Below, piece by piece: positions 6,001 to 58,300 of a stretch of DNA of 64,000 nt. The notes beneath the pieces were generated by a model. That model did no database searches. It was not told the DNA's origin and worked only from the letters and a program-made list of their open reading frames with translations. The position numbers and the translations under genes are program-made. This DNA comes from Mytilus californianus (Eukaryota): the NCBI RefSeq assembly GCF_021869535.1, contig NW_026262679.1, forward strand, positions 106,764,001-106,828,000, in the 5' to 3' direction. The number at the start of each line of letters is the position of its first letter. Position 1 is the first letter of the stretch.

Positions 6001-9000
6001 ATTTTGAATAAACTGCCTCGCTGAGTGCAGCTGGATACGCCCGCAGAGGTCCAACCCTGAACAGTTGGGGCAAAAATGGACACAATATTCAAGCTTGATA
6101 CAGGTCTGAATTTGGATTGTAATTAAATACTTGACATATTATAGGTTTCTGAATAAATGTAGTCAAAGAACTTGAAATTGGTTATATGAATTGAGTTTAT
6201 ATTCAAATTAAGATTTCTTCTTCTTGTGCAATACACTGTGCTGTTGCTCAATACTTAGTAAATCTGTTGTCAGACTATATTATAAACAAATAAGGTTTAA
6301 TAACTTCTCAATGTTATATCAGAAATTTATAAAAAACTAAAGGGAGGTTATCTTAATAGATATAAATCAGTCATCAAAGTTTAATGAAAACTGCTCTAAG
6401 CACTTAAAGGATATTGTCCAAAAACTGATAAATCCCCTTTTTGTAATGAATAAAACCCCATAAATCGTAAACTTATAGTCTAAAATTTATAAAAATCAAA
6501 AGGGAGCTCATGTCGATAGAAATAAACAATTCACCAAAGTTTCTTGCAAATTGGTGAAATTGTTTTTGAGTTATTGTCCGAAAACTGGAAAATCCCCCCT
6601 TTTTTGATGAATAAAACCCCAAAACTCTGAAACGGTACATCAGAAATTTATAAAAAACGAAAGGGAGCTCACGTCAATAGAAATAAACAATCCACCAAAG
6701 TTTCTTGCAAATTGGTGAAATTGTTTTTAAGTTATTGTCCGAAAACTGGAAAATCACCCCTTTTTTAATGAATAAAACCCCAAAACTCCGAAACAATAAA
6801 TCCGAAATTTACAAAAAACGAAAGGGAGCTCATGTCAATAGATATAAACATTTCATTAAAGTTTCATGCGAATTGGTTAAAGCATTTTTGAGTTATTGTC
6901 CGACATGTTGACGACAGACGGACGGATGGCCAACGGTATACCATAACACGTCCTGTAAACGGGCGTATAAAAACATGAAAAAGGGGTTCTCAATTTATTA
7001 TCTGGGATAAAAAAAAAAATTCCAACAATCAAGTTCCATAACTCTGGACAGGTAAAAATAATAAAAATCAAACTTAACTTGTCTTTAGTTAGTGGTAAAA
7101 AACCTTCCATTTTAATTAATTAATTTCAGATGGGTTTTCTATTAATTATCTGGAAAAGTGTGATGGATGGACGGACAGACCGAAATTTACAAAAAACGAA
7201 AGGGAGCTCATGTCAATAGATATAAACATTTCATTAAAGTTTCATGCGAATTGGTTAAAGCGTTTTTGAGTTATTGTCCGACATGTTGACGACAGACGGA
7301 CGGACGGACAACGGTTTACCATAATACGTCCCGTAAACGGGCGTATAAAAACATGAAAAAGGGGTTCTCAATTTATCATCTGGGATAAAAAAAAAAATTC
7401 TAACAATCAAGTTCCATAACTCTGGACAGGTAAAAATAATAAAAATCAAACTTAACTTGTCTTTAGTTAGTGGTAAAAAACCTTCGATTTTAATTAATTA
7501 ATTTCAGATGGGTTTTCTATTAATTATCTGGAAAAGTGTGATGGATGGACGGACAGACGGATACAATGATTCTTATATACTCCTGATTCTGTCGAGCATA
7601 GGTATAAAAGTGCATCTGTTATATATGAAAAAAAGAAGATGTGGTTTAATTGCCAATAAGACAACTTTCCACCACATAATGTACAAAAAAATAGTATGTT
7701 GAGAGAGTCCAATACCCTCTGCATGTTAAAGAACCCTTGAAAAAACTCTGAGAGAGATCTGTACATTTGCAGGTTGCCTGTTATAAGGTTTAATTTCTGC
7801 TCCTATCCAACATACCCTATTGCCTCAGTGGTATTCCAAATTACCAGTCTTACATTGTAGCTTAATGAATTGTTTAAATTGTTCTTGTTCTGAACGTATA
7901 TTTTTCAGCAAGCAACAATCAATCAATGATTTCAACTGTCATGTACGTATGTGAGCCATCTAGTAACTCAACTTAATTATAAGTTAAAATTCTAAGTTCT
8001 TCTATATTACAACTGTATTGTAACATTTCATCTAGCTTTGAAAAGCACATATTTATTCTTTTTTGCAACATGTGTAATGAAAAAGGCATTTAACTTGCCA
8101 TATTGACTGCAGAGGGGCTCATACAATTTCATGGTGGCAAATACATGTATAACATACATGTTTATAAGATTTAAAATGTACTTTTAAAGACTTGGACAGT
8201 AAATTATACAAATGTGTGTCATTGTATGTTTTGATTTTACACCTCCCTGAAGAATTAGGGTTCTCACAAGGATTTTTGTAGGCAGCAAGTCCAGGGACTC
8301 ACCATTTTTGTCCAGGGGGAATCCAGGAACTCACAATTTTTGCCATGACAATTCACACAGTGTGGAGAAAAATTTTTGAAATTCTTGAAAAAAACTTGTT
8401 TGACATATTTTGATAAATTATTACGATACAAGATATTTTTGCATGGCGTTATCTGTCTTTTCTAATGCTTATCTGTGTTGTGTTTGTCTTTTTTCTATTG
8501 GCAATTGTGTTGATTGGCTTTCTTCAACCTTTGATTTGTATAGCATAGTCCCCTTGATTTTTATTGTTATTCTAAAATTACCTGTTAATATAAAATCTGT
8601 TCATTCCAAGATTGTTCTCATACCATTTTAATACTTTTCCTGAAGCACCAAGAGCACATGCAAATGTTACATGATCAATATGAGTGACTAAAGGATTTTC
8701 ACAGCTACTGCATGGATTGTCCACATCTTCAAAACCTGGTAAAAAGCTTCCCTTATATTTACTGTCATCAACAATAGTATGTATAACATTTCCGATACAA
8801 GACTTAATAATGGCTGTTTCTACTGAACCGTTAATGTCTGAGATCACATTTGGGGGCTTCAATACCTCTCCACCTGCCTGACATACTCTATGTACACAAT
8901 GCTTGACATCTTTGACCTTCAAGGCTATGTTGCTAATTGTGTTCACAAATGTCTTTGGAGCATTTGCAATGTTGACAGCACTGTTTATGCCTAATGATAG

Positions 9001-9246
9001 ATACTGGTTTGAAATATATGGATCTACTAAGTGATCTTCTGTACATGTAATTGCATCAGAAACGTCAAATGTCTTGGGTTGTGTAATCAAAAATTTTGCA
9101 TTTCCAGAACAAAGTACCCACTGATTATGCGATTTGATTGAACGTTTTGCAATCAAAGCAAATTTGTATTTGCTTGTAAGATCTCGAGTTAATTTTTCGC
9201 CGTCACTGACATAAAATTCTGCGTGATGAAGGCTATAACTATCCAT
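1..9246 (-). CDS. HPDL: 4-hydroxyphenylpyruvate dioxygenase-like protein; minus-strand exons 9246-8582, 4158-4001, 3706-3555, 2947-2835, 143-<1 (3' end outside window)
   Basis: Manual splicing gives GT-AG introns with matching phases (2,1,0,2). N-terminus [13 protein letters not shown] aligns with HPDL. The three iron-ligand motifs are present: [23 protein letters not shown]. The C-terminal [33 protein letters not shown] is HPDL-type. Confidence 0.92.
830..2225 (+). repeat. Interspersed composite repeat with about 167-bp internal core repeats (HPDL intron 4)
   Basis: Anchor ccatggaaatgagatgtgccaatgc-like motif recurs at about 1411, 1576, 1755, 1922 and 2089; the element ends in cgccgacgccgc. 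An inverted related copy lies at about 23180-23960. Confidence 0.7.
4240..4922. mobile_element. Non-autonomous HINE/Helentron-like repeat with GACA/GACG microsatellite and terminal hairpin
   Basis: Internal core repeats, gacagatggacagacagacggacag, then agtccccttcgacttcgtcggtaggggac hairpin. Confidence 0.5.
6260..7560. repeat. Core-repeat complex (aaagggagctcatgtcaatagatataaac...) containing a 378-bp direct duplication (about 6802-7179 / 7180-7557)
   Basis: Near-identical text at an offset of 378; ORFs 6877..7110 and 7255..7449 are near-identical translations. Confidence 0.75.
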
Positions 9247-38196: not shown

Positions 38197-39021
38197 CTAG
38201 CCGTGCGATGCCTTGTGACGAAGCATGTTACCAGACTGTGCAAAGGATTTACCACAGAACGAACAGACGTACGGACGCTCACCGGTGTGGATTCTGGAAT
38301 GCTTGGTGAAAGTTGAGAAGTCTGCAAAACTTTTCGGACAGTAGGTACAACTGTATGGCTTCTCCCCAGTATGGATACGGACGTGTGTACGGAGTGTTGA
38401 CTTCTGGGTAAAACGCTTTCCGCAGTAATTGCACTGATGTGGACGCTTGTTCTCCTGGTGAGACTGAAGGTGAACTTTCAAGTTTGGTTTCGAGCTGAAA
38501 ATCTTGTTGCAGTAGGTACATACAATAGGCTCTTTTGGTTTCTGTGTTGACTTGGAACGTGTAGCTGCAGACGACAAGGCTTGCTCCAGTAAGTCGGACA
38601 CACGGTCATAAGCAACTGGTGTAGATGAACATTGCAATGGAGACTGTTCTGGGTTATGAAGTGTAGAGACGGGTTGCTGCAATGATGAAGGACACCTGGT
38701 GTCAAATTCTTCTTGCATGATATCAGAAGCGATGTTGGTCTCGTATGGTTGACGTTCGGAGTAACTATTAATAGCTTTAGAATCGTACAAACAAGAGCTG
38801 AGTTGTGGTTTCTGTTGTTGGTTGTTGCCAATCATGTTGCTGAGCTCTGGAAAGGTACCAAGAATCTGACTAAAGATGGATGACCTGAGTTCATTCTTGT
38901 TGTATGATAGTGGTTTGTTGTCGTCTGTCAATGGCTTTGGTAGTATTGTAGGTTGAACGTATGGTATGTAGGTTGGTGACGGAAAGAACATTCCACTTGG
39001 ATGCAGATACTGGGAGGACAT
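38197..39021 (-). CDS. C2H2 zinc-finger transcription factor with 4 C-terminal fingers, Glass-like; about 274 aa in one coding exon
   Basis: ORF 38197-39102 has four C-x2-C-x12-H-x3-H fingers with TGEKPY/TGERPY linkers. Likely start is MSSQYLHP at 39021, just after a splice acceptor (ttttccattttcag-like tract, exon start 39031). AATAAA on the minus strand at 38154-38159. Confidence 0.85.
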   Translation of the reverse strand: MSSQYLHPSGMFFPSPTYIPYVQPTILPKPLTDDNKPLSYNKNELRSSIFSQILGTFPELSNMIGNNQQQKPQLSSCLYDSKAINSYSERQPYETNIASDIMQEEFDTRCPSSLQQPVSTLHNPEQSPLQCSSTPVAYDRVSDLLEQALSSAATRSKSTQKPKEPIVCTYCNKIFSSKPNLKVHLQSHQENKRPHQCNYCGKRFTQKSTLRTHVRIHTGEKPYSCTYCPKSFADFSTFTKHSRIHTGERPYVCSFCGKSFAQSGNMLRHKASHG

Positions 39022-41657
39022 GTCTGCTGGTCTGAAAATGGATAAAATAAATGTTACAACGCATGCATGTTTATGAAATTTAGACAAATTGATAAATGTC
39101 ATGATTTGTCAAGTTAAAAATATTGTTGGTATAAATTCAACTTATTTCACATCACCAAGTTTATCGACGGCATTTGTAGACTTAAACAATTTAGATCTTG
39201 ACGTATTGTATAGACACGTGCTTAATGTTGAATATGTATGTTGCCCTTTAGATGTCTTTTGGTTATTTTTGTCGTAAGATTGCTTTCTTATTGACGTATA
39301 CCATTCACATTTGTTTCAGTCAACGGTGAACAAAAAAAATGTTCACATTAAGGTTACTAAAAGGCAATTGTGGAACTTATACATTATCAATGTTTTTTTT
39401 TCTTTATATTTTGCGAAATTTAGTCAAAACAGATAGCATACATGTATAACGACTCTTATATGACACCGATTATCACACAGAACGGTCTTTTTGATTTGTT
39501 CATACATTTTAATTTGTATTTGTTGATGTTTGTTAGATCAGTACCAAGTATTTTAATGCACATACCTTTGTTCTTGGACTGGAAATGTCGGGTAATAAAA
39601 TGGCATGTATGGTAGTTCCATATCTGAAAAAAAAACAACAAATAGAATAAATTACAACCAATATGTATTTCAAGAAAGCCTATACAAATATACTTACCAT
39701 AAGATGTTTTTGAGTTTTCGATGGAGTTATAAGTTTAAACGAAACCGAATTAAATTGTAGACATTTTAAACACGCATCCTCCGAGATCAAATTTGGTATG
39801 TAGTCGAGCTTCCATATGTGGTTTTTATTCCAAAATGATATTATCCATATAAAACTTGAATTAAAAAAGTGTAATACATTGTATCTAGGACGTATAACTA
39901 ACAAATATAAGTCCTTGATTGTATCAAAATTCCCATTTTTTTAAATAATCAGCAAACAAATTTTGAGTTATTACACCATTATCATTGTTATAAGGGCTGT
40001 CAGTAAAATGTTAACAGGTTTAATAAATTGCTGATACATTATTTATAAGACATTATTTACTTTCGCTATAAAAGCATATGTATCACTCCCAAACTAACAG
40101 TCATCAACAACTTAGGTATGTAAATAAATTTCAATATATTTTATTTTAGTTATTTTTTAAGAATAGCTATTTCACAACAGTCTGCATTAGTGTAAGAAAG
40201 AAAAATAAAAAAGACAACTTACCTATATGATCTGAGAAATTTGTTTGTAACAGAAACGTTTTTGAGTAACAATTGCTTTCAGTCCGAATGGCTTCCAACT
40301 AATATGTTCAAATTTTGAAAAAATGCAGATTTATTAAATATTTTTCACTTTTTCTGAATAAAACAATTTGCTATTGGTCAATTACTTTCAATTTGTTTTT
40401 ACAAGATACCGTTATGCACCTCCTCCTAGAAGCCACTCTGAGAAATTATTTAACACCTTTTGAGTTGTTTTAATGGTTTCATTATTAATTAACAATGTCT
40501 TTAACACTCTGATCAAAGATGAGCTTTGATCAATCAAAAAGTTCTTTGATGTTTTCGGCGTGGATAGTTTTTGAGTTGTCATAATTTTACATATTATAAT
40601 ATTGTGCAATCCCAATTAAATAATCAAAGAAATTAATTTATTAATAAAATTTTTGAATACACAGAAAATGTAAGAATTGTTGCACCCACGTAGCAAACTA
40701 AGATAGCTTTTTAATAAACGACAACATAATAAACCGTTGGTTAATTTTGTTTAATAAATTACTTTCTTAAACTCATGGGTTTTCAAGAACTTCCACCAAT
40801 AGGAATACTAGAGCAACTGCTTATAATTTTTAGGTTCCAAATGTAAAAGGTATAGAATCTTCTTTCTTTTTCAGTGGTATTAAAAACCTGGAATGTTTTG
40901 CCAGATCATGTAAAAGGTATCATGTGAATTCAAAAATAAAGTTTCAGTTTGAAAGTAAAGATAAACCTAATGAGTAATCTCAGGTCAATGTCAGATGCAG
41001 CTTTTATATTTTATTCGATTGGTTTTTTTTTATACGACTGTTTTAAGCTGAGATTCATAAATACTTTTTATTGCTATAAAATTGAATGAGAATATTTTTT
41101 TTTTATTATGCACACTATAAGGACCCTGGGACTATTATACCAACATATAATATTCCCAGAAGGACCCGGTTGGAAATAAGTTTTTTGCTTTCATGGGTCA
41201 TCCTTGGGTTAAGGCATAAGTTGTACCTAAAGTCACAACCATTACTATATCTTAAGGTTGTATTTAGCTAAGTTTCTATATCTTATTATGTATTTGCATA
41301 TATTGCCTTTAAATATACATTATAATTATTATTAGTTACTTATTCGGACTGCATATATGTTACCACCTAATTTAGATTTCATTCACTGCTTGTTCAAAAT
41401 GTCTCAATAATCTGTAAAGTTTTACTTAGCAAACATACCAATGACCAAAACCAGCTCACAACTAAAAAAACAAGCGACACGTGATTAGTAGGTCAAAGGT
41501 TCAAAACACCAGGAAAGACGCTTCCTAAACTTTCAAAGAAGAAGAAGCTTGTTCACAACAATTTGAGAGAAAAACACAACAAATAGATAAGAGAGAGAAG
41601 AATCAACCAAATATTTTATTTGATGATCTGACATATATATGAAATAAGTTGCAAACC

Positions 41658-42612: not shown

Positions 42613-43133
42613 AAAAATGCTTACAGATGGCAAACACTGCAATTTTGATGGATATGGGCATATTTTGAACACTAATCTCGAAATATGATAGAGACAACAT
42701 TCGAAAAACCATTGGCAAGATTTCGTGTAAATTGGAACTATGCGTTAAATACAAATTAGCTCATTTTGGTTTCAGATTTCCAGCAATGTATTTACATGAA
42801 ACCAAATTACTGTCTTTAAAAGCAATGTGTAGGACTGATAAACATTTATACATCAATTTTATATATAGATGTTTTTAAAAGATTTCTTAGTGACAATTTC
42901 TCTGCTTATTTCAGAACGTGAGAGTTAATGATCATAAACACTTTTTAGTACGAATAAAATCTATAATAGTAATACCAAGCATTTCTAAACCAAGATGAAA
43001 AAAATATATTATCGACACCCTACCTCATAATATAACGCAAATACTACAGTATACATAACAAATGGACCTTCTCCTTTAACGCACACAAATAAAAAAAAAC
43101 AGAGCTCTGCAGTGTTTATTAAACAGACTAACG

Positions 43134-46100
43134 CTATGTCACAGAGTTTAATTCTACATAAAGATTGGTGTAAGACGTAATGTCTGTGTGAAAACTATGT
43201 TTTCTTTCGACAAATCCCTCCGCTCCAGCCACTGCTCGTGACATTGTAACACTGAATCTTGGATTATTTTCATAAGTATCACCATAACTACTTGTTTCCA
43301 ATCGAGAATCGAAGATACTGGTAGCGACTCTTGTAAATTCAGACTTCTGTGTCGGGTGACGTCTGTTCCCGCCAAATATATTATGTGTTGTTAACGCATG
43401 ATCGTAATTTTCATGACCCTTCATTCGGGTCTTGGTCGGGGAAAACTTGATGGTTTTATTTTGAAGGAACATTTTATCTCCGTGAGTGAGAAAATGTACC
43501 ATTACATTGTCAATGTTGAAATATTTGGTGCTGGTGTCTATATGGGATCTAGAAACGTCTGCAACAAATACACCATTCTCCCCTATAATCTGAGTAGATA
43601 GTAAGACAAACATAGGTAACGATTTTCAAAATACCAATCACAATCGATAAAATAATTCATTAATTTCGTTTTGATATATATATATATATGTGTGTGTATA
43701 TTTTTATTGTCAGACGTTATCATTTAAATCATTAGAATAATTTTTTATAAAGGCTTAATGTTAAAATTTAAAGCAAACCTAGATATATTGGGTAAACGTT
43801 AATAAGAGAGAAACCTTAACAACACAATAAAACGTAAAAGGGATTGCGAGATTAGTCATTATATGCGCTTCACACAATATTGCATGCTTCCAATGTTCAT
43901 TGTTGAAATGTTTAAGATGACACTTTTTTATTCATAGTTTTGTAAAATGTTTTCATGTTATCTAAAAATGCTATATAGAATCGATATCCATACTAATAAA
44001 TGTAACTTCTTTACCTCTCCTTTAGCTTGAATAGTTCCAGCATGCATTATTACGAGTGCAGTATTTTCATCCACACCAATACCCCAGGCTACACCATGCT
44101 TTAAACTACGGGTGTCTGACAACAACCTGATGAGACGACCTTCTCGTCCACGCTGACTAAAATTTAAGGAATAAAAAAAGGAAACATTAAAATGTCAATT
44201 GTTGGTGAACAATTGAGAGGTCTTTCCTTTTCGTAATGTAATATATATGCTTAAATAGGCGTAGAATGCATTGAAAAGCTCCAAAACACACATAAAACCC
44301 TCAAAATATGGTAAAAAACACATATAATTTGCAATTTGGGAAATGACCTTGATTTTTTACCTTATGACCTTTGTCAAGGTCATTAGTCCATGATATCATT
44401 ACAAAAGACCCAACAAGGTTTAAGGTCAAAGGTCAAGGTCAACGTAACAATTTGACCTTGTGGTATTTTTAAGGCCACATGAATTGATGATCATTGGTGA
44501 AGATCCTAGGCTACGACTTACGGTTTCTGAGTTTAAGTGGCCAACTGACATCGGTTAATTTTCAAAGGGCATAACCTTACCAATGAGTCGTTGAATCTTG
44601 TTGATCCAAATGTAACGAAGAACCAGGGTTTGGTCCTGAACAAATTCCAATCTTCAGTTTTTTTTCTACCTACTATGGTTACTGTGTTTGAATGATAACA
44701 TAGTTTTCGGTGTTAGGGGAGAACACCGCTATTGATAAAGGAAATGTTACGACGTGGTGCTATAACCACAAGCTAGCTTTTGGTCAACCGATACTTGATA
44801 CCTAATATCATTTCAACATGTCGCGTACTTTTTATGGGAAATGTCGTTAAAGTTTGGCAGAAAAAAGAATAATAACCAGAAGAAATAATACAGTAAGGTC
44901 TTTCCTATAGTGATTGTAGATATAATTTTCAAGAGTAATGCATTGTTTACGTATAATTACATAAGGTGTAGCGTTCTTCTTTTTTCATTGGTTATAACGA
45001 TCACGTGATTCGGAGGGTATTTAACAATTATGGACTTTTGACGAGGTCAATACGTTAGATATGGACCTGTTCGGATTAAATTGACCGAGGACAAGTCCGA
45101 ACATGTCCATATATAACGTATTGACCTCGTCAAAAGTCCATAATTGATAAATATAGTTCCATGATATCCAAAGTTTATTTATTCAGAACATGATTTATGT
45201 AAGTACGTAATGTGTATTTCTATAAAGTTATTTTCTAGCTTTGTTCTCTCGATGTGCATTTAGATAAAGTTTTTTTGTTGGATTGCTGTCTTTTTCAAGC
45301 TACAACAATCGTTTTGTCGCCATGGGGAAGAATAGGAAATTGCATCTTTGATTCACTACTCGATCAACCGTGTTACATATTTTTTTCAACAAAATACACT
45401 AATGCTTATCAGAAACTTCATTTTCTTTAACCCGAATGAGGATTGGTACTGTCTAGAAATGTTCCTCTAGATACATTGCATATCGAAAATATAAAATGTT
45501 ATGCCAACAATAGTTAGAACAAACCTGAAATGTGTGTCAAAGATAAAACCATCCAACATACCAGTTCCGCCATCTTTGTTGTATATCAAATTATCAGGAT
45601 GATCTTTGCTTTCAGATTGAAAAGCCCCATATCGCAAACCATCCCAACTCATCCCACCTTTAATATAAAAGATATAGGCTTAAACGAGAACTGATTTAGC
45701 TAATCAGTGAGAGATGGAGAGAATCAGAACTTATTTACTGTTAAGACAGAACACGAAAACTTAGGTTTGTATCACTTTTTGTCGTCTGATATGGGACTTG
45801 AACACTTTCAGAAATTACGAAAACTTTAAAGGAACAATGCATCATGGAACTTATTTTGTTGTCCGGGTACCGAATACAGATTACATATACACACGATGGT
45901 AGTACGTAGTTCACATGATTAATTTTTGCTGGTGAAAATAGTTAGATAGTACCCACCGTATGTTTATGTGCCTTTCCTAGGTATGAATATCGTCACTGGT
46001 GGTCACTGGCTGTTTTAAACACTTGTTTTTTTATTGTTTGGTCATCCTCTTGAGTGAATGAGACTCGGGGATCATTTTAAAACATACAGTAATTTGTACA

Positions 46101-48775
46101 CTTGTCCAGCTCTCTATTTAGTTACGACTTGTCTTGATCAAGGACGTATAACTAACACATACGTCATTGTATTGATGGACTTATATCGTCTCTCATTACG
46201 CTTTAGCACAAAACATGATCGACCTTTATCGAAGACCTATATGGAAGAAATGATGTAAATAATTTCAAACTGACCTCTGATCATAATAGCTGACGGTTGG
46301 CAAGCAGTACCTGCACTTGTGCCAGCTATAACGGCGCCAGCATCAAATTGCTCCTTGATCGCTGTCATTGCTGGAGATTCTACGTGACCACTTAGAAAAA
46401 ACCTATAATGATGCGATTCGGCAAATAAAGCATAGATCATTTTTTACAAAAAGTAAAAAAATGTTCCGTTACCAAGGATCTGCTTACCCTTCCGGAGCAC
46501 CTGTGATCACCCCGTTTTTGCCATGGCATTGTAAGTTCCATTTCGACTTATGAGTTTGATTTTTTGCTTAGGTATAGCTTTCGCCCCTCTTTTTCAAATC
46601 ATACAGCAGAATCGATTACCGACTAATGCCGATTCTGGTAAATTGTCAGTCTCCGAGAATACAATTTGTTAAGTAGTCAATGCCTAAATTGTAAATTGTG
46701 GGAATAATAGCATGATTTAAATGATACACGGTGCATGACAATTGCATGCTAATTTGACAAAAGACTGTTTTTTATCTGTTTGATCCTCCCACAAGGTTTG
46801 TGTATTTTTTTCAGTAATCTGGCCCTACGGAGGTTATTGTATCAAACATAGGTACTTGGGGACAGGACAATTTATTTTAGCCCTCCGCCTTTTTTTCCAA
46901 AATCCGTTATTTTTTGTTTTCTATCAATTTCAATTATTTTCGCGTTTTTTGTTTGTTTGGTATCATATGAACATAAATATGCTAGAAATAACTAGTATTT
47001 GCTATTTACTATCAATTCCAAGTTTACTATCCACAGCGGTCACTGATATATTATATAGATATAATAGGGCTAAAAAAATGTTCTGTCCCCATGTACCTAT
47101 GATATCAAACACTTGTTATATGCACTTAAATTGGTACCGTAAACGTATTGTATTATACAAATCAAAACTATTACTTAGTAATTGAAATCTCTTTTACCAG
47201 GAGAAAAACATTTGTAAAGAGTAAAAATATCCGTCTTACGTATCAATAATTCTCTGTTGGTCTCCACCTCCAAAGAAGAATCCTGTTTGTTGTTTTATTT
47301 TGCCCACAATACTCTGATTCGAATTTTTGGAAATATGATTGACGTCTATTGGTATACAATAGACAGAAAGGGCCTTATAACGATGCAGAAATAAGTCGGA
47401 ATAATAATAACAGCTGTCCGCGGGATCAGCAGAGGCCGCAGTGACGATCCCAATCTTGGCACGCGTTACTCCTCCCTAAAATGTTAAAAGGTGCAAAATC
47501 AAAAGCTGATTTATATAGTTTTACATACGTGGACAATAGTATGTAGTACCCCGTCACGTCAACTCTGTGTTTTTGTTAGATGAATTTCTGCTTTGGATCG
47601 ATCTGATGAGTAAAGCCCTTTTCAACTGACTTTTATAGTTTGTTCTTATGTTGTACTGTTACACCACTGTCCCAGGTTAGGGGAAGGGTTGGCTCGCCTT
47701 GAAATTAATTTAACCCCGTCACATTCTGTATGTGCCTGTCCCAAGTCAGGAGCCTGTGACTCAGTGGTTGTCGTTTGTTGTTGTATATCATATTTGTTTT
47801 TCGTTCATTATTTTGTACTAGTCAGGCCGTTAGTTTTCTTGTTTGAATTCATTTCGGGACCTTTTATAGCTGACTATGCGGTATGGGTTTTACTCATTGT
47901 TGAAGGTCGAACGGTGACCTATAGTTGTTAATTTCTGTGAGTTTTTGTTAGATGTATTTCTGCTTGGTCTTTTGGTCTCTTGTGGAGAGTAGTCAATCAT
48001 ACCACATCTTCTTCTTATTTTTATACAAACATATAAAAATGAAATTATTGGCTCTAGCCAATGGATGGCTTGTTTAATATGGAGTAAATCTAATGTTCAC
48101 GTATTGCTGTCATTATATATATATATATATGGAATATTTTAATGTTCATTTATTTTTGTAATTATAATTAGAGCTTATACTCACAAAAAATGAATTGAGC
48201 AGATACATATCAATTATAAATAAACGGAGATGTTGGGTATACGTCCATGAAACAGAGACTTATTGAGTAATAAACCAATAGACTTCTTTGATGAAAAAAA
48301 AAAGTTTTGGAACCACATATTCTGTTGTTGTGAAATATTGTTTAATTCTCATAGTTTATTTATATTTTGTGTTTTATCTGTTTTATGAAATATCTGTGGG
48401 CGGTATACGTCAATCAGACAGCAACCCGACAACACTGAAAACAAACAAACAAAAGACAAAAGACATTTTTAGAGGTCAAATATTACAACGATCTTGTGTT
48501 TTGTCTCTGGATTTTGTTCATTCACTGAGGTGTCTTCTGTACTCTCAAAGTGTAAAATCGCCAAATGTCATTATCCAGACAAGTTCTATCACAAAAACAT
48601 TTAAAGAACTTACAGCAAGTTTAACGATGCTGCTATAGATTTCTGTGTTGTTTTCATCCAGATGGCCGCCAACCAAAACCAAGCTTTTACCATAAGAATT
48701 ATATTGAGGTAATTTATCGTTTACCAAGAAAGCCTGCGCAACTGGCAACGAAAGCAATAAGCACAAAGCCGCCAT
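43134..48775 (-). CDS. Secreted cyanophycinase-like serine peptidase (family S51), 418 aa; exons 48775-48614, 47475-47240, 46402-46275, 45657-45525, 44156-44015, 43589-43134
   Basis: Six exons splice in frame (1257 nt; phases 0,2,1,2,0; all GT-AG). Motifs: signal peptide MAALCLLLSLPVAQA, SLVLVGG, IVTAAS, GFFFGGGDQ, IAGTSAG, FDTHFSQRGREGRL, GIGVDENTAL, VHFLTHGD. AATAAA on the minus strand at 43115-43120. Confidence 0.9.
45025..45150. repeat. Long hairpin element in cyanophycinase intron 4
   Basis: caattatggacttttgacgaggtcaatacgtta...tcgga, spacer, tccgaa...taacgtattgacctcgtcaaaagtccataattg. Confidence 0.75.
47540..47990 (+). repeat. Dispersed repeat family (cactgtcccaggttaggg...gtgcctgtcccaagtcaggagcc...); other copies at about 24420-24690 (minus) and about 34240-34321 plus 36457-36630 (split by the CACTA element)
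   Basis: Three recognisably homologous copies within the window. Confidence 0.7.
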
Positions 48776-48923: not shown

Positions 48924-50499
48924 TGTAAACCTCAGATCTGTGTACGGCCTCAAATCTGTGTCCGTTTCTCAAATCTGTGTCCGTTTCTCAAATCTGTGCC
49001 CCATCGTGACGTCAATCGCTAATTTATGTCCGTTAAAAAAGATACGGCCTCAAATCTGTGTCCTATTTTCAAATTCGTTTTCAATCGTGACGTCATTCGC
49101 AAATCTATGTTCGTTTAAAAGATACGGCCTCAAATCTGTGTTCTTTTCTTAATTTTTTTTCCAGTTTGTTTTGCCATGCGCAAATTTATGCCAGTCTAAT
49201 AAGTACGGCCTTAAAGGATTTTTGTTTTATTAAGTCATTTCCCATAATTCAAGGTTAAGTTGGGATGTGTTCTCCATGTGTGTGCTTCAAAATTTTACAT
49301 GCGTGTGTAATTATTGTATGATCTACATGTTATTGTAAAACTACAACATTTTCAAATTGTTTGCTTTTCTTGATCCCGTGTTTAATTGTTCTGTAGTAAT
49401 TATCGTTACTTCCCTTTACTCATTATGTCTTGGTAACAAATACGAAATATAAGTTAATAATTTAATTTTGGATGTAACGCGTCTTCTGATTGGCTGACGT
49501 TGTTTTGTTTATCAGCTCATAGACATAATTTTGTCATGTGACCGTGACGTCATCAACGTTTTTTCATGGTTTACTACGGTTTAAAACAATTAAATTATAA
49601 GAAATGACTGTAATATTTTTTCTGTCTATTCGAAATAACATAAAAAATGTGGTGCACACTTTAAAATTATTCAGTGTGCACCACATTTTTTATGTTATTT
49701 CTTCATAGACAGAAAAAATATTACAGTCATTCCTATAATAAACAACCTGAGACAAAACCACATCTGTATACAAGCAACTAAAGATACATGTATGGCCTTC
49801 AACAATGAATTGAACCTATTCTGTATCGTAATCTGTAAACACATACAACTATTTGTTCAATGTCTCAATGTATAGGTACCACATAAAAATGTTTAGGGTA
49901 TAATTTATTGCCGGTTTAACAACGACATTTTGTGCCACTATCTTATTAAAAAAGTTTTTTTCTGGTGAAACTATTTCGGATTCGAATCTATGTATTTTTT
50001 AAAATCCATTGTGTACCATGACATCAACATTCAACAACCACAACATAGTTCTGTGTACACATTATTGGCCAAACGAGCATACATGTTACTTTATTAATGT
50101 GCCTTCAAGAATGAAACTACACATATTGTTTTACTTGATTACGTCTTGCTATGTCTTACGTCACCACATTTCGATAAAGGACATAGATTTGTGACAAAAA
50201 TAGCCATAGATTTGAGTTAATAAAGGACATAGATTTGAGACAATATAGAACATAGATTTGAGACAATAAAAGACATAGATTTGAGACAATAAAGGACATA
50301 AATTTGGAACGTCTATGACGCAATATTAAAAAGGACATAGATTTGAGACAATATAGAACATAGATTTGAGACAATAAAAGACATAGATTTGAGACAATAA
50401 AGGACATAAATTTGGAACGTCTATGACGCAATATTAAAAAGGACATAGATTTGCGGAAAAGACATAGATTTGAGGCTGGACATAGATTTGAGGCTTACA
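48924..50499. mobile_element. About 1.58-kb TIR element with subterminal repeat arrays and a candidate 4-bp TSD (GATA)
   Basis: GATA|tgtaaacctcagatctgtg... and ...catagatttgaggcttaca|GATA. Left arm has ctcaaatctgtgtcc repeats; right arm has inverted ggacatagatttgag repeats including a 108-bp duplication. Confidence 0.6.
49600..49735. repeat. Long hairpin (about 60-bp arms) inside the 48924-50499 element
   Basis: aatgactgtaatattttttctgtctat...aaaaaatgtggtgcacact / agtgtgcaccacatttttt...atagacagaaaaaatattacagtcatt. Confidence 0.8.
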
Positions 50500-52353: not shown

Positions 52354-55300
52354 TTAAGCATGATGTTCAAAAGTTGGATTGTTCACTCCATGATATCTTC
52401 CCGCTCTTTGATTTCTGTCTTTTGGAACATTTATATAGTATGGTCCATCACCCTGAAATTTATTAGGTCTGTTTTCTGGACGATCCCATTTTGCCTTCTG
52501 TGCCTTTATTTGGTACCGCAATGTTCGCGAAACACACATGATGAACATCTGTTAAAGAAATATTTTATAACATTTGTTACACAATTATACCCACGTCATC
52601 TGTTATATAATTTTGAGAACTTAATCAATGACACTTGTGTTATCAAGAATGTTGTCAAAGGTTTTACATGGACATGTAAAATACTTTTAAGAAAAGTTTT
52701 TTTTCAGAGTTAATGTCAAAAAAGATTAATTAAAAAAAAAAAAAAACAAAAAAAAAAAAAAACTTTTGTTTTAGTTAAATCTAAAAGCTGTCATTTGGCA
52801 CCGTTCGTTTTGTTGAAACAGTCATAAGAGTTAACCATTTCTATATATTCCTTAGAAAAATATTGGTAATGATTTCGCGTTAGAGGGATCACTTAATTTT
52901 ATATATGAATTCCCAAATAAAAGTGATACCCTACGCGATTTGATGTCAACATGTATTATAATCTATTGAAAGTAAATATAAAAAGACAACACAATAAGGG
53001 ATGGGAGGCTGATGAAGAAGGAACTCTTTTATGTCAATTAAAAGAAAGCGGATACAAATCCTGTTTCAGGTGTTTTTCTCATTACTTTCATTTTATCTCT
53101 TTATATAAATATATTGAATCTTGACTCGTAACATTTCTTGAAAAAAGTAAGCTACTTTATTAAAAAACCTGGATCCGTCATTGAAATTGCTAAATTGTGT
53201 TTGTATATTTTGTCAAACACTGATACAGTAAATCAAAGTATGATAACAGTTTGATTATCAAGGAAATAAGAGATTATGAAATTCATTCGACCGACCGACC
53301 ATATTAATGATTGTTTTCAAGTGCTTTTATTTGCACTCCCTTCGCTATTGCTTTTGAAGAATATTTTATTTTTAACGAAGTTGGTTTATATCACGTGCAT
53401 TCATCCTTTGCTATTCCTAACCTGAGGTACCAGAATTCCTAACAAAACACCACCTGCTACTAAAGCATTAGAATTAATCCAGTTGCCAAGAGCCTTCAGA
53501 CAACCAACTGTGTAAATCTTATCCACATTTGCTCCAGGGGAAACAGAACCATCTGGCTGAAATAATATTTAAATAATTTGATTATATTGTTCAAAAGCGT
53601 ATATATGAATAAGAAATATATATGATTATACGCATTATTTTTAACTTTTAACATATTAATTTTTGCTTTTGAAGCGTTTGTTGAAAACTCCGGAACCTAT
53701 TACACCACGCCAATTGTCACTAACAGAGCAGGAGCTGCTGGCCCTTCATGATGACCTAGGTTTCATGTTGCTGAATCTTAAGTTTGTTTCAATCTTTAGC
53801 TTTTTCTGTAGGGTTATGTGTAATGTTGTTGAAAATTTTTCCGTCTCTTTTTACCATGGTTTTGTCTTTCTTTTGATTCTTGGTATATTCTGCAACTTGT
53901 TATAGGTTGGACAAAAGTTGCAAGTTGACTATGTCAATCAGATACATTTGGTACAATTATTCAACGTTTTATACTATGTCAATCAGAAACCCTGGTACAA
54001 TTATTCAACGTTTCAGACTATGTCAATCAGATAACCTTGGTACAATTATTCAACGTTTCCGACTATGTCAATCAGATACACTTGGTACAATTATTCAACG
54101 TTTCAGACTATGCCAATCAGATTCACTTGGTACAAATATTCAACGTTTCAGACTATATCAAATCAGATACACTTGGTACAATTATTCAACGTTTCAGACA
54201 ATATCAAATCAGATACACTTGGTACAATCAACGTTTCAGACTATATCAAATCAGATACACTCGGAACAATTATTCAACGTTTCAGACTATATCAAATCAG
54301 ATACACTTGGTACAATTATTCAACGTTTCAGACTATATCAAATCAGATACACTTGGTACAATTATTCAACGTTTCAGACAATATCAAATCAGATACACTT
54401 GGTACAATTATTCAACGTTTCAGACAATATCAAATCAGATACACTTGGTACAATCAACGTTTCAGACTATATCAAATCAGATACACTCGGAACAATTATT
54501 CAACGTTTCAGACTATATCAAATCAGATACACTTGGTACACTTATTTAACGTTTCAGACTATGTCAATCAGATACACTTGGTACAATTATTCAACGTTTC
54601 AGACTATGTCCATCAGATACACTGTACAATTATTCAACGTTTCAGACCATATCAAATCAGATACACTTGGTACAATTATTCAACGTATCAGACTATATCA
54701 AATCATATACACTTGGTACAATTATCTAACGTTTCAGACTATGTCAATCAGATACACGGTACAATTATTCAACGTTTCCGACTATGTCCTTCAGATAGAC
54801 TTGGTACAATTATTCAACGTTTCAGACTATAGCAAATCAGATACACTTGGTACAATAATTCAACGTTTCAGACCATATCAAATCAGATACACTTGCTGCA
54901 ATTATTCAACGTTTCAGACTTTGTCCATCAGATACACTTGGTACAATTATTTAACGTTTCAGACTATGTCCATCAGATACACTTGGTACAATTATTCAAC
55001 GTTTCAGACTATGTCAATCAAATACACTTGGTACAAATATTCAACGTTTTAGACAATGTCAATCAGATACACTTGGTACAATTATTCAACGTTTCAGACT
55101 ATGTCCATCATATACACTTGGTACAATTATTCAACGTTTCAGACTATGTCCATCATATACACTTGGTACAATTATTCAACGTTTCTGACTATGTCCATCA
55201 GATACACTTGGTACAATTATTCAACGTTTCAGACTATGTCAATCAGATACACTTGGTACAATTATTCAACGTTTCTGACTATGTCAATCAGATACACTTG

Positions 55301-58300
55301 GTACAATTATTCAACGTTTCATACTATGTCAATCAGATACATTTTGGTACAGTTATTCAACGTTTTTTTACTATGTCATTCAGATACACTTGGTACAATT
55401 ATTCAACGTTTCTGACTATGTCCATCAGATACACTTGGTACAATTATTCAACGTTTCAGACTATGTCAATCAGATACACTTGGTACAATTATTTAACGTT
55501 TCAGACTATGTCAATCAAATACACTTGGTACAAATATTCAACGTTTTAGACAATGTCAATCAGATACACTTGGTACAATTATTCAACGTTTCAGACTATG
55601 TCCATCATATACACTTGGTACAATTATTCAACGTTTCAGACTATGTCCATCATATACACTTGGTACAATTATTCAACGTTTCTGACTATGTCCATCAGAT
55701 ACACTTGGTACAATTATTCAACGTTTCAGACTATGTCAATCAGATACACTTGGTACAATTATTCAACGTTTCTGACTATGTCAATCAGATACACTTGGTA
55801 CAATTATTCAACGTTTCATACTATGTCAATCAGATACATTTTGGTACAGTTATTCAACGTTTTTTTACTATGTCATTCAGATACACTTGGTACAATTATT
55901 CAACGTTTCGGACTATGTTAACTAGATAACCTTTAACTTTACAATTGTTCAACGTTTAAGACTATTTCAATCAGATAACCTTTAACTTAACAATTATTCA
56001 ACGTTTCAGACTATATCAAATCAGATTCACTTGGTACAATTTTTCAATGTTTCAGACTATGTCAATCAGATACACTTGGTACAATTATTCAACGTTTCAT
56101 ACTATGTCAATCAGATACACTTGGTACAATTATTCAACGTTTCAGACTATGTCAATTAGATAACCTTTAACTTAACAATTATTTAACGTTTCAGACTATG
56201 TCAATCAGATAACCTTTAACTTAACAATTATTTAACGTTTAAGACTATGTCAATCAGATAACCTTTAACTTAACAATTATTTAACGTTTTAGACTATGTC
56301 AATCAGATAACCTTTAACTTAACAATTATTCAACGTTTCTGACTATGTCAATCAGATACACTTGGTACAATTATCTAACGTTTCAGACTATGTCAATCAG
56401 ATACACTTGGTACAATTATTCAACGTTTCAGACTATATCAATCAGATACACTTGGTACAATTATTCAACGTTTCAGACTATATCAAATCAGATACACTTG
56501 GTACAATTATCTAACGTTTCAGACTATGTCAATCAGATACACTCGGAACAATTATTCAACGTTTCAGACTATATCAATCAGATACACTTGGTACAATTAT
56601 TCAACGTTTCAGACTATATCAAATCAGATACACTTGGTACAATTATTCAACGTTTCAGACTATGTCAATCAGATACACTTGGTACAATTATTCAACGTTT
56701 CAGACTATGTCAATCAGATACACTTGGTACAATTATTCAACGTTTCTGACTATATCCATCAGATACACTTGGTACAATTATTCAACGTTTCTGACTATAT
56801 CCATCAGATACACTTGGTACAATTATTCAACGTTTCAGACTATGTCAATCAGATAACCTTTAACCTTACAATTATTTAAAGTTTCAGACTATGTCAATCA
56901 GATAACCTTTAACTTAACAATTATTCAACGTTTCAAGCTATGTCAATCAGATGACCTTTAACTTTACAATTTTTTAACATTTCAGCTACGAAGAAAAAAT
57001 ATATTAGACTTACCTTTGGATCCATGACATTTTTTCCACACAATATATTCCTAATATCACCCTAAATAAAATTACAAAATTTTTAATTTCAATTACATAT
57101 TAAGTTAGGCATATTATTTTTAATTGTTACCAATAGTAGCCTTAAACATTATACAGCTAGTCGTTTTGGTGGGATTTTTGTTAATGATTTTATACTCATC
57201 AAATTACCTATCTTTTTTCTAAAAATACTGAAACATCACAAATAACTTCAGAAAAAAGCACGATGTAACACTCTTTTTGGCAAATTAGGCAACCAAGATG
57301 AAATTACACAGTGACTGTTTAAATATTTTTTTCAAGAGTTGATTGATTTGCAAACATTGTAATATGACAAATGCAACAGAGAGTCATTTAATTAACTTAG
57401 ACGTTGCCGTATACTGATGGTTTTTGAACAAAGTTTATACATATTTTGGAATCACGATGAAATATGTCTGATGGATCTCTCTTATCAACCAACAATATGA
57501 TTTTTTCAGAATTGAAATACAAAATGCTACCGAAATAAATATCTGATAATCTATTATAATAGTAAGTGTTCGATATGCAATCATACATATTTCTAAAAAC
57601 TTAACTATCTTATACAGTCGCTTTAACATTTCATTTTGATGTCCGAATTTTAATAGTTCCTACAATATTGTCTAACCGAGAAATATCTTATACATGTATC
57701 AATATTGTTAACCAAGTTATGTTCACTTATATCCCTCTCTTGTCGACGTCGAGGCTATTTATTTTCGAGATTTTTAACGTACTCGAAGAAATTTGACATA
57801 TTCTCGTTTTTTTCTGTTTGCAATGGTCGCGTTTGTAAATCAGTCACTTTATACTATTTATAACTGTACATACCGCTTTGATCTTACAACACGATGCTGG
57901 AACGGAACATCTTTCTGGAGATTTACTGGTAGTGGTACAATTGTAATACATGTTGTCGTTCCAGTCAAGGAATCCGTCTTCCTTGTCTCCAAGTCCACAA
58001 CATTTCAACTACAAGTAAAAGTTCAAAAGGTATTTATGATATAATAATTCATTATTGCCACTACACGTTGAGCAAGAAGGCATTATTTTAAATTACAGTT
58101 TGAGAATACATGTACATGAATTCATGGTAATAATGTTTAGCATTTCTTTACTAGAGAACTACACATTTTCAGCATTTTTTGCTCACCTGGCCCAAAAGGG
58201 CCAAGTGAGCTTTTCTCATCACCTGGCGTCCGTCGTCCGTTAACTTTTACAAAAATCTTCTGCTCTGAAACTACTGGGCCAAATTTAACCAAACTTGGCC

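Follow-up and report, generated by a model that had tools for sequence, protein, structure and literature searches.

Cyanophycinases of peptidase family S51 are best described from bacteria, in particular as the CphE enzymes of Pseudomonas and as CphB of Synechocystis sp. PCC 6803. A gene of this family is described here from a mussel, Mytilus californianus. It lies in a stretch of 64,000 nucleotides (nt) of contig NW_026262679.1 (NCBI RefSeq assembly GCF_021869535.1, forward-strand positions 106,764,001 to 106,828,000), which is referred to as the window in its full length, and it occupies positions 48775 to 43134 on the minus strand. The closest described enzyme type is represented by CphEal of P. 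alcaligenes DIP1, which is encoded by a 1260-bp gene and comprises about 420 amino acids (aa), including a 24-residue Sec signal (PMC3235067). The triad proposed for CphEal is Ser171-His224-Glu251, the substrate pocket is formed by Gln136, Asp222, Arg228, Arg230 and Arg233, and Thr223 replaces Gln173 of CphB (PMC3235067). In CphB itself, mutagenesis identified Gln101, Asp172, Gln173, Arg178, Arg180 and Arg183 as critical residues (PMC3235067). CphB is a cytosolic protein of about 270 aa that carries neither a signal peptide nor a C-terminal extension. A pseudo-CphB from Pseudobacteroides cellulosolvens is available in the Protein Data Bank (PDB) as entry 7uqv; it is likewise of the short form (about 275 aa), and the title chosen by its depositors marks it as something other than a true cyanophycinase. 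Peptidase E (PepE of Salmonella, aad-a of Xenopus and the CG-type genes of Drosophila) belongs to the same family and also places its serine nucleophile in a GxSxG-like turn, but is a cytosolic alpha-Asp-X dipeptidase of about 230 aa.

In the databases RefSeq and UniProt, genes of dozens of animal genomes are automatically named 'cyanophycinase' or 'cyanophycinase-like'. No study of an animal cyanophycinase was found in the searched literature, and the sole mention encountered was a row in a table of an abalone growth transcriptome, in which the transcript was higher in large animals (PMC4661900). The literature treats cyanophycin as a purely bacterial nitrogen store: a survey of cyanophycin genes took in bacterial genomes only (PMC10206079), and the breakdown of the polymer in animal guts is attributed to microbes (PMC3235067, PMC7980309), as is the gut cyanophycinase of filter-feeding carp (PMC7980309).

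Assignment of the mussel protein to the CphE type

Searches of family, structure and sequence databases were run with single exons or with an 81%-identical Mytilus orthologue rather than with the whole spliced protein, and family members retrieved with exon 2 were then compared against the spliced protein. Exons 2, 3 and 5 match the cyanophycinase equivalog profile TIGR02069 collinearly with 34.6, 19.7 and 22.6 bits, which are exon-by-exon scores to be read against a whole-protein cutoff of 126.6. The full-length proteins of the Mytilus orthologue (131.3 bits) and of the oyster (131.4 bits) both pass this cutoff, while lamprey (111.9), Daphnia (119.7) and a CphE-type protein of Pseudomonas (122.2) lie just below it. 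The Peptidase_S51 family (PF03575) is matched by exon 3 alone with 18.2 bits (E 0.002), and its gathering cutoff of 23.9 is exceeded by the orthologues P0173 (33.4), P0115 (39.6) and P0159 (25.5). Sub-threshold Pfam matches of exon 6 to Dishevelled and Tna_leader were rejected as chance hits, and exons 2 and 5, searched singly against the PDB, returned no match.

The spliced protein is collinear over its full length with a Mytilus 'cyanophycinase-like' protein of 427 aa (P0112/P0173; 81% identity, 676 bits), and its identity to the oyster and lamprey proteins amounts to 56% and 44%. The comparison with UniProt CPHE_PSEAG, the CphE of P. anguilliseptica (Q8KQN8, P0391), yields 42.8% identity over 369 aa (E 2.6e-86). 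Collinear full-length matches of this strength place the gene model far beyond chance. The similarity to CPHE_PSEAG includes the C-terminal extension, which is 40.5% identical over 84 aligned residues; this stretch of about 100 residues past the CphB core is alignable across animals, protists and bacteria, including actinobacteria and Pseudomonas. As an aside, the last ~40 residues of CPHE_PSEAG fail to align with the family, in contrast to the A. alcaligenes protein, whose alignment continues up to the last residues. The 2002 entry therefore seems to contain a frameshift close to its 3' end.

Structure prediction points in the same direction. AlphaFold models the Mytilus orthologue with high confidence (pLDDT 94.3, pTM 0.91), and the PDB entries that fit this model best are those of the cyanophycinases 7uqv, 7uqw and 3en0, with TM scores by target of 0.85-0.88. 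The top match is the pseudo-CphB 7uqv (TM by target 0.88, rmsd 2.4 A), in which the same motifs are found. A superposition on Synechocystis CphB had been suggested as a check and returns the same fold (3en0/7uqw, TM by target ~0.85) at about 23% identity in the structural alignment. Among Swiss-Prot models, the best match is CphE Q8KQN8, which covers residues 20-422 with TM scores of 0.77/0.79; CphB models reach only residues 20-327. The extension alone (residues 312-418, exon 6 of the window) also gives a confident model (pLDDT 94.4) with one helix and a five-stranded sheet, for which no significant fold match was found in the PDB (best E 0.25, TM <0.3). That the extension binds the insoluble polymer is a guess.

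The original prediction had compared the protein with cyanobacterial CphB. Its family, triad and pocket stand, and the fold, the Ser-His-Glu triad and the equivalents of five pocket residues are indeed common to CphB and the mussel protein. The closest type, however, is the extracellular CphE of Pseudomonas rather than CphB, because the mussel protein is 43% identical to CphE, falls into the same length class, possesses the C-terminal extension and has Thr where CphB has Gln173, a sixth pocket residue that the original prediction had passed over. Like the CphE enzymes of P. anguilliseptica BI (Q8KQN8) and P. alcaligenes DIP1, with which it shares a length of ~418-420 aa, it combines an N-terminal secretion signal (in the mussel a predicted one) with an S51 catalytic domain and an extension of about 100 aa that is homologous to theirs, and it displays the signature Q-S-D-T-H-R-R-R-E, including the Thr before the His. 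In contrast to the CphE genes, the mussel gene is eukaryotic: it is interrupted by five introns, and its product has a signal peptide of eukaryotic type and sequons for N-glycosylation. Small insertions lengthen the intervals from Ser to His and from His to Glu by 3 and 5 aa, respectively. Finally, the mussel gene is animal-encoded and was inherited vertically for hundreds of millions of years, and the activity of its product is a prediction from homology.

Predicted signal sequence and active-site residues

The mussel protein begins with MAALCLLLSLPVAQA followed by Phe16, and residues 13-15 read A-Q-A. Residues 2-12 form a hydrophobic core (mean Kyte-Doolittle value up to 2.7), which, together with Ala at positions -3 and -1 before Phe16, supports the proposal of a signal sequence that is cleaved after residue 15, and orthologues likewise begin with hydrophobic N-termini. 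Hydrophobicity reveals no further membrane-like segment in the 418 aa, and no retention or sorting motif is recognisable, the C-terminus reading ...ELNSVT. The three sequons NNT, NQS and NKT that had been listed are located at Asn42, Asn107 and Asn311.

Every catalytic motif named in the original prediction is also found in the spliced protein: GGGDQ with Gln127, GTSAG with Ser162, DTHFSQRGREGR with Asp216, Thr217, His218, Arg222, Arg224 and Arg227, and GVDENTA with Glu250. In the alignment, the catalytic triad is intact and consists of Ser162 (GTSAG), His218 (DTH) and Glu250 (GVDENTA), which correspond to Ser132, His174 and Glu201 of CphB and to Ser171, His224 and Glu251 of CphEal. The pocket is complete as well: Gln127, Asp216, Arg222, Arg224 and Arg227 take the positions of CphB Gln101, Asp172, Arg178, Arg180 and Arg183. 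At the position of CphB Gln173, the mussel protein has Thr217, as does the active CphEal (Thr223). The nine-residue signature of triad and pocket is present in the mussel protein and likewise in 40 of the 63 aligned family members.

A Mytilus paralogue encoded outside the window (P0003 / P0111) is about 50% identical; in this protein GGEP replaces GGDQ and Ala precedes the catalytic His, which makes it possibly a paralogue with altered specificity.

Gene structure, transcription and selection

The prediction of a six-exon gene that splices to 418 aa is borne out by a complete reading frame (coding sequence of 1257 nt) and by five introns that are all bounded by GT..AG, with phases 0, 2, 1, 2 and 0. 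Exon 1 (48614..48775; this and all following features of the gene are on the minus strand) starts with the ATG at 48775-48773 and encodes residues 1-54. The first 15 of these, encoded by 48775-48731, are the predicted signal peptide with its cleavage site behind A-Q-A, and the sequon at N42 lies in this exon as well. The exon ends at a GT donor in phase 0, and this intron position is common to every animal orthologue examined. Exon 2 (47240..47475, residues 55-133) carries the sequon at N107 and, within GGGDQ, the pocket residue Gln127 (47259-47257), and it matches TIGR02069 positions 27-97 with the 34.6 bits given above. Exon 3 (46275..46402, residues 133-176), which provides the matches to both Peptidase_S51 and TIGR02069, contains the nucleophile Ser162 (46317-46315) within GTSAG. 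Exon 4 (45525..45657, residues 176-220) has D216-T217-H218-F among its final residues, with the catalytic His218 at 45532-45530. Exon 5 (44015..44156, residues 220-267) matches TIGR02069 positions 168-205 and supplies Arg222, Arg224 and Arg227 as well as the catalytic Glu250 (44068-44066) within GVDENTA. Exon 6 (43134..43589) encodes residues 268-418 and the stop codon (43136-43134); it comprises the last strands of the S51 fold, the sequon at N311 and the CphE-type C-terminal extension (approximately residues 312-418, 43457-43137). An AATAAA polyadenylation signal follows at 43115..43120, 14 nt past the stop codon. No second copy of the gene was found within the 64-kb window.

Public sequencing runs that contain exon 6 derive from a species that matches the window almost exactly or from a close relative with many RNA runs. 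In run X1, an RNA run of the close relative, a single contig of 643 nt spans exons 2-3-4-5 consecutively at the predicted junctions (blocks 47238-47396, 46273-46400, 45525-45655 and 44015-44156). The offsets of 2 nt at two of these junctions represent alignment ambiguity, since exons 3 and 4 start with GT, the same letters with which the intron starts. Depth in this run is zero in unique stretches of the introns, exons 1 and 6 are covered too, and an RNA contig ends at 43095, past the AATAAA at 43120-43115. DNA contigs of the window-matching species cross exons and introns with an even depth of ~45x. The gene is under purifying selection, with a dN/dS of 0.29-0.30 against the Mytilus orthologue at a dS of ~0.35.

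Introns 1, 2 and 4 hold high-copy repeats of the host, located at 47531-48121 (intron 1), 46349-46545 (intron 2) and 44182-45166 (intron 4). The summed depth of DNA contigs over these stretches rises up to millions, with many loose ends, and they are also present in RNA runs; these are high-copy interspersed host repeats. Directly upstream of the start codon, an 81-bp unit is repeated 2.2 times at 48968-49141. The two copies contain the perfect palindrome TGACGTCA, a consensus of the CRE/ATF type, at 49007-49014 and 49088-49095, i.e. about 230 and 315 bp before the ATG. These palindromes could be promoter elements or merely part of the repeat content.

Antiquity and distribution of the animal genes

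To compare introns, genomic loci of orthologues were retrieved and exact exon models were derived. Positions and phases of all five introns of the mussel gene recur in the Mytilus orthologue, oyster, sea lamprey and amphioxus, one being displaced in the latter by a single alignment column; a hemichordate shares four of the five and Daphnia two. As molluscs share these introns with lamprey and amphioxus, the introns are older than the split of protostomes and deuterostomes. The 'cyanophycinase-like' genes of Mytilus, Magallana, Haliotis, Lottia, Capitella, Daphnia, Branchiostoma, Petromyzon and other animals are orthologues with the same architecture and intron positions, and there is no difference in kind between them and the gene in the window. 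The original prediction was right in viewing the sequence as a genuine intron-containing animal gene of the cyanophycinase family. The gene is not a peculiarity of the mussel genome, however, and belongs to a bilaterian family that is ancient and has kept its introns. In terms of sequence it represents no new kind; the gene is this species' copy of the CphE-type family.

A maximum-likelihood tree supports the long-form clade, the molluscs (chiton, gastropods and bivalves) and the crustaceans with 100/99 each. All sampled bacteria are placed apart in a group (87/99) that also takes in Anaeramoeba and Willaertia, and the animal sequences appear as an unresolved basal grade relative to this clade of bacteria and some protists. 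The tree has no root inside the long-form clade and leaves room for a very ancient transfer of the family to an early eukaryote or animal.

Among the matches listed, carriers of the gene include bivalves, gastropods, a chiton and the annelid Capitella; branchiopods, a copepod, an amphipod and crabs; two hemichordates, a brittle star, three amphioxus species and several lampreys; and the bacterivorous amoeboid protists Anaeramoeba, Pelomyxa and Willaertia. Most of these listed carriers live by suspension feeding, deposit feeding, grazing or bacterivory, as would be expected if the role is dietary. The family is also expanded locally in several filter feeders: Daphnia pulex (L084) has three S51 cyanophycinase-like genes in tandem within 5.6 kb, and Sinanodonta and Dreissena have two copies each on one contig.

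Proposed function

The gene is most readily understood as a functional mytilid host gene for a CphE-type S51 cyanophycinase of old standing whose role is most likely digestive, and this interpretation is held with moderate confidence. The protein would enter the secretory pathway by means of its 15-residue signal peptide and would probably be N-glycosylated. Its S51 domain is expected to employ Ser162-His218-Glu250, residues that are seen in the sequence, while the pocket of Gln127, Asp216, Arg222, Arg224 and Arg227 would grip the beta-Asp-Arg side-chain unit of cyanophycin. The poly-Asp backbone would then be cut and beta-Asp-Arg freed, as in Pseudomonas CphE and Synechocystis CphB. Hydrolysis of cyanophycin by the mussel protein is strongly suggested by the 43% identity to CphE and by the full conservation of triad and pocket. 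In the animal, the enzyme may digest the cyanophycin of ingested cyanobacteria or other bacteria. The site of this digestion would be the lumen of the gut or the endolysosomal system within digestive cells, and a separate isoaspartyl dipeptidase would be needed afterwards to liberate Asp and Arg. The gene, with its present introns, already existed in the common ancestor of protostomes and deuterostomes.

A digestive role is plausible from context because cyanophycin resists ordinary proteases; it traverses the mouse gut intact unless a cyanophycinase is supplied (PMC5399006). Extracellular cyanophycinases are also known from bacteria, which scavenge environmental cyanophycin with secreted CphE (PMC9974463). 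In a broader and more tentative proposal, which is put forward here as a possibility somewhat short of probable, CphE-type cyanophycinase would be an overlooked enzyme with which phagotrophic and microphagous eukaryotes have digested their food since ancient times. The bilaterian ancestor would have possessed it, introns included, and it would have been retained by aquatic animals that feed on suspended matter or deposits or by grazing, from molluscs to the lampreys with their filter-feeding larvae.

Several observations weigh against a secreted digestive cyanophycinase. The pseudo-CphB 7uqv retains GGDQ, GTSAG, DQHFxxRGRxGR and GIDEDT, and its authors reportedly found it inactive on cyanophycin; as it keeps both fold and motifs, the conservation of motifs is no proof of activity. 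For the animal members, no enzymatic data were found in the searched literature. The signal peptide is a rule-based prediction from hydrophobicity and the -3/-1 residues. Regarding the spliced transcript that had been proposed as a check, exons 2-5 are joined in RNA of the close relative, but run X21, an RNA run of the window species of which about 6% was read, has zero reads on the exons. The link to feeding mode is anecdotal, as it rests on the matches listed, and at least one carnivorous whelk (Babylonia) carries the gene too. Mice absorb beta-Asp-Arg but are reported to lack a suitable dipeptidase, so that the Arg in it is not bioavailable to them (PMC5399006); the proposed recovery of nitrogen hence needs a second enzyme.

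Alternative interpretations

In one alternative, the mussel protein would be an S51 enzyme of cyanophycinase fold that does not act on cyanophycin, an ability that would have been lost or never acquired in animals. It would then be a pseudo-enzyme or a peptidase with another substrate, which might be Asp/Arg-rich or isoaspartyl-containing and of endogenous or microbial origin; acidic proteins of the matrix and peptides of bacterial walls are examples. Besides 7uqv, with its shared fold and motifs and a name that implies no cyanophycinase activity, the lack of a published assay for any animal member speaks for this interpretation, as do the lamprey and Daphnia scores of 111.9 and 119.7 under the TIGR02069 cutoff of 126.6, and the occurrence of members that have lost some pocket residues, e.g. 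the Mytilus paralogue P0003 (GGEP, DAH). The profile scores lose some of their force through the genuine CphE-type protein of Pseudomonas, which also falls just under the cutoff (122.2). Moreover, all nine triad and pocket residues of the mussel protein are kept exactly as in the characterised CphE, and the identity of 43% extends over the whole enzyme, including the extension. Purifying selection and the retention of the full Arg-rich pocket for more than 500 million years argue for a conserved and specific substrate. An S51 enzyme inactive on cyanophycin is considered rather unlikely.

Another possibility leaves the catalytic assignment untouched and changes the place of action: a true cyanophycinase might work not in the gut lumen but inside cells of the digestive gland or haemocytes, in their endolysosomal or phagosomal system, where it would degrade engulfed bacteria and serve intracellular digestion or immunity. 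Digestion in bivalves is largely intracellular. A signal peptide and sequons suit lysosomal proteins as well as secreted ones, and homologues exist in the phagotrophic amoebae Anaeramoeba, Pelomyxa and Willaertia. The sequence does not discriminate between these locations, as it contains neither a recognisable sorting or retention motif nor a second hydrophobic segment. Against an intracellular site speaks that the related enzymes of bacteria act outside the cell (PMC3235067). Such a site is given a rather low probability, comparable to that of an enzyme inactive on cyanophycin.

An identity as a PepE-like alpha-aspartyl dipeptidase is highly improbable and was rejected. Such enzymes belong to the same peptidase family (PF03575) and S51 alpha-aspartyl dipeptidases do exist in animals (Xenopus and Drosophila), but PepE and aad-a are only ~230-240 aa long, are encoded by genes separate from the cyanophycinase family, and compare with the Mytilus orthologue model at TM scores of ~0.38-0.40 and 13-18% identity, far behind the cyanophycinases. 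Their fold matches cover at most residues 30-327 of the model (most end at ~285-290) and hence lack the C-terminal extension, and according to published descriptions of PepE they are devoid of the Arg-rich DxHFxxRGRxGR pocket.

An assembly contaminated with bacterial DNA, or a gene that the mussel recently received from a bacterium by horizontal transfer, could be suspected in a family that is overwhelmingly bacterial and whose nearest bacterial proteins (Tumebacillus, Ktedonobacteraceae and Pseudomonas) are ~40% identical. Both are dismissed as the least probable explanation of all in view of five spliceosomal introns with positions and phases common to oyster, lamprey and amphioxus, host repeats within these introns, even DNA depth over exons and flanks, a spliced RNA contig, and a tree in which the mollusc clade follows species relationships and all sampled bacteria cluster apart.

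Other features of the window

A 301-aa open reading frame (ORF) on the minus strand (38197-39102) encodes four C2H2 zinc fingers in its C-terminal part (Pfam zf-C2H2, E 6.8e-23) and probably represents one exon of a gene for a zinc-finger transcription factor, ~4 kb from the 3' end of the cyanophycinase gene. A further minus-strand ORF of 222 aa (8578-9246) has no Pfam match. On the other side of the gene, a 45-bp minisatellite extends over 53927-56952 in about 66 copies with 90% matches; it produces the long repetitive plus-strand ORFs between 53880 and 56879, which do not indicate a gene.

Biological significance

The conserved introns make the family a clear example of an enzyme that is 'bacterial-looking' and yet encoded by a gene of long standing in animals. 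If its members are active, many aquatic animals would own an enzyme for a polymer that ordinary proteases cannot attack, and a dedicated enzyme would be added to the digestive physiology of invertebrates. This would bear on the gain of nitrogen from cyanobacterial blooms by grazers and filter feeders and would be relevant to aquaculture feeds built on cyanophycin or beta-Asp-Arg; the animal genes would also represent a source of eukaryote-adapted, glycosylated cyanophycinases for biotechnology. Under the broader proposal of an overlooked digestive enzyme, cyanophycin would be a direct trophic route by which animals obtain fixed nitrogen, in the form of Arg and Asp, from bacteria with no gut microbes in between.

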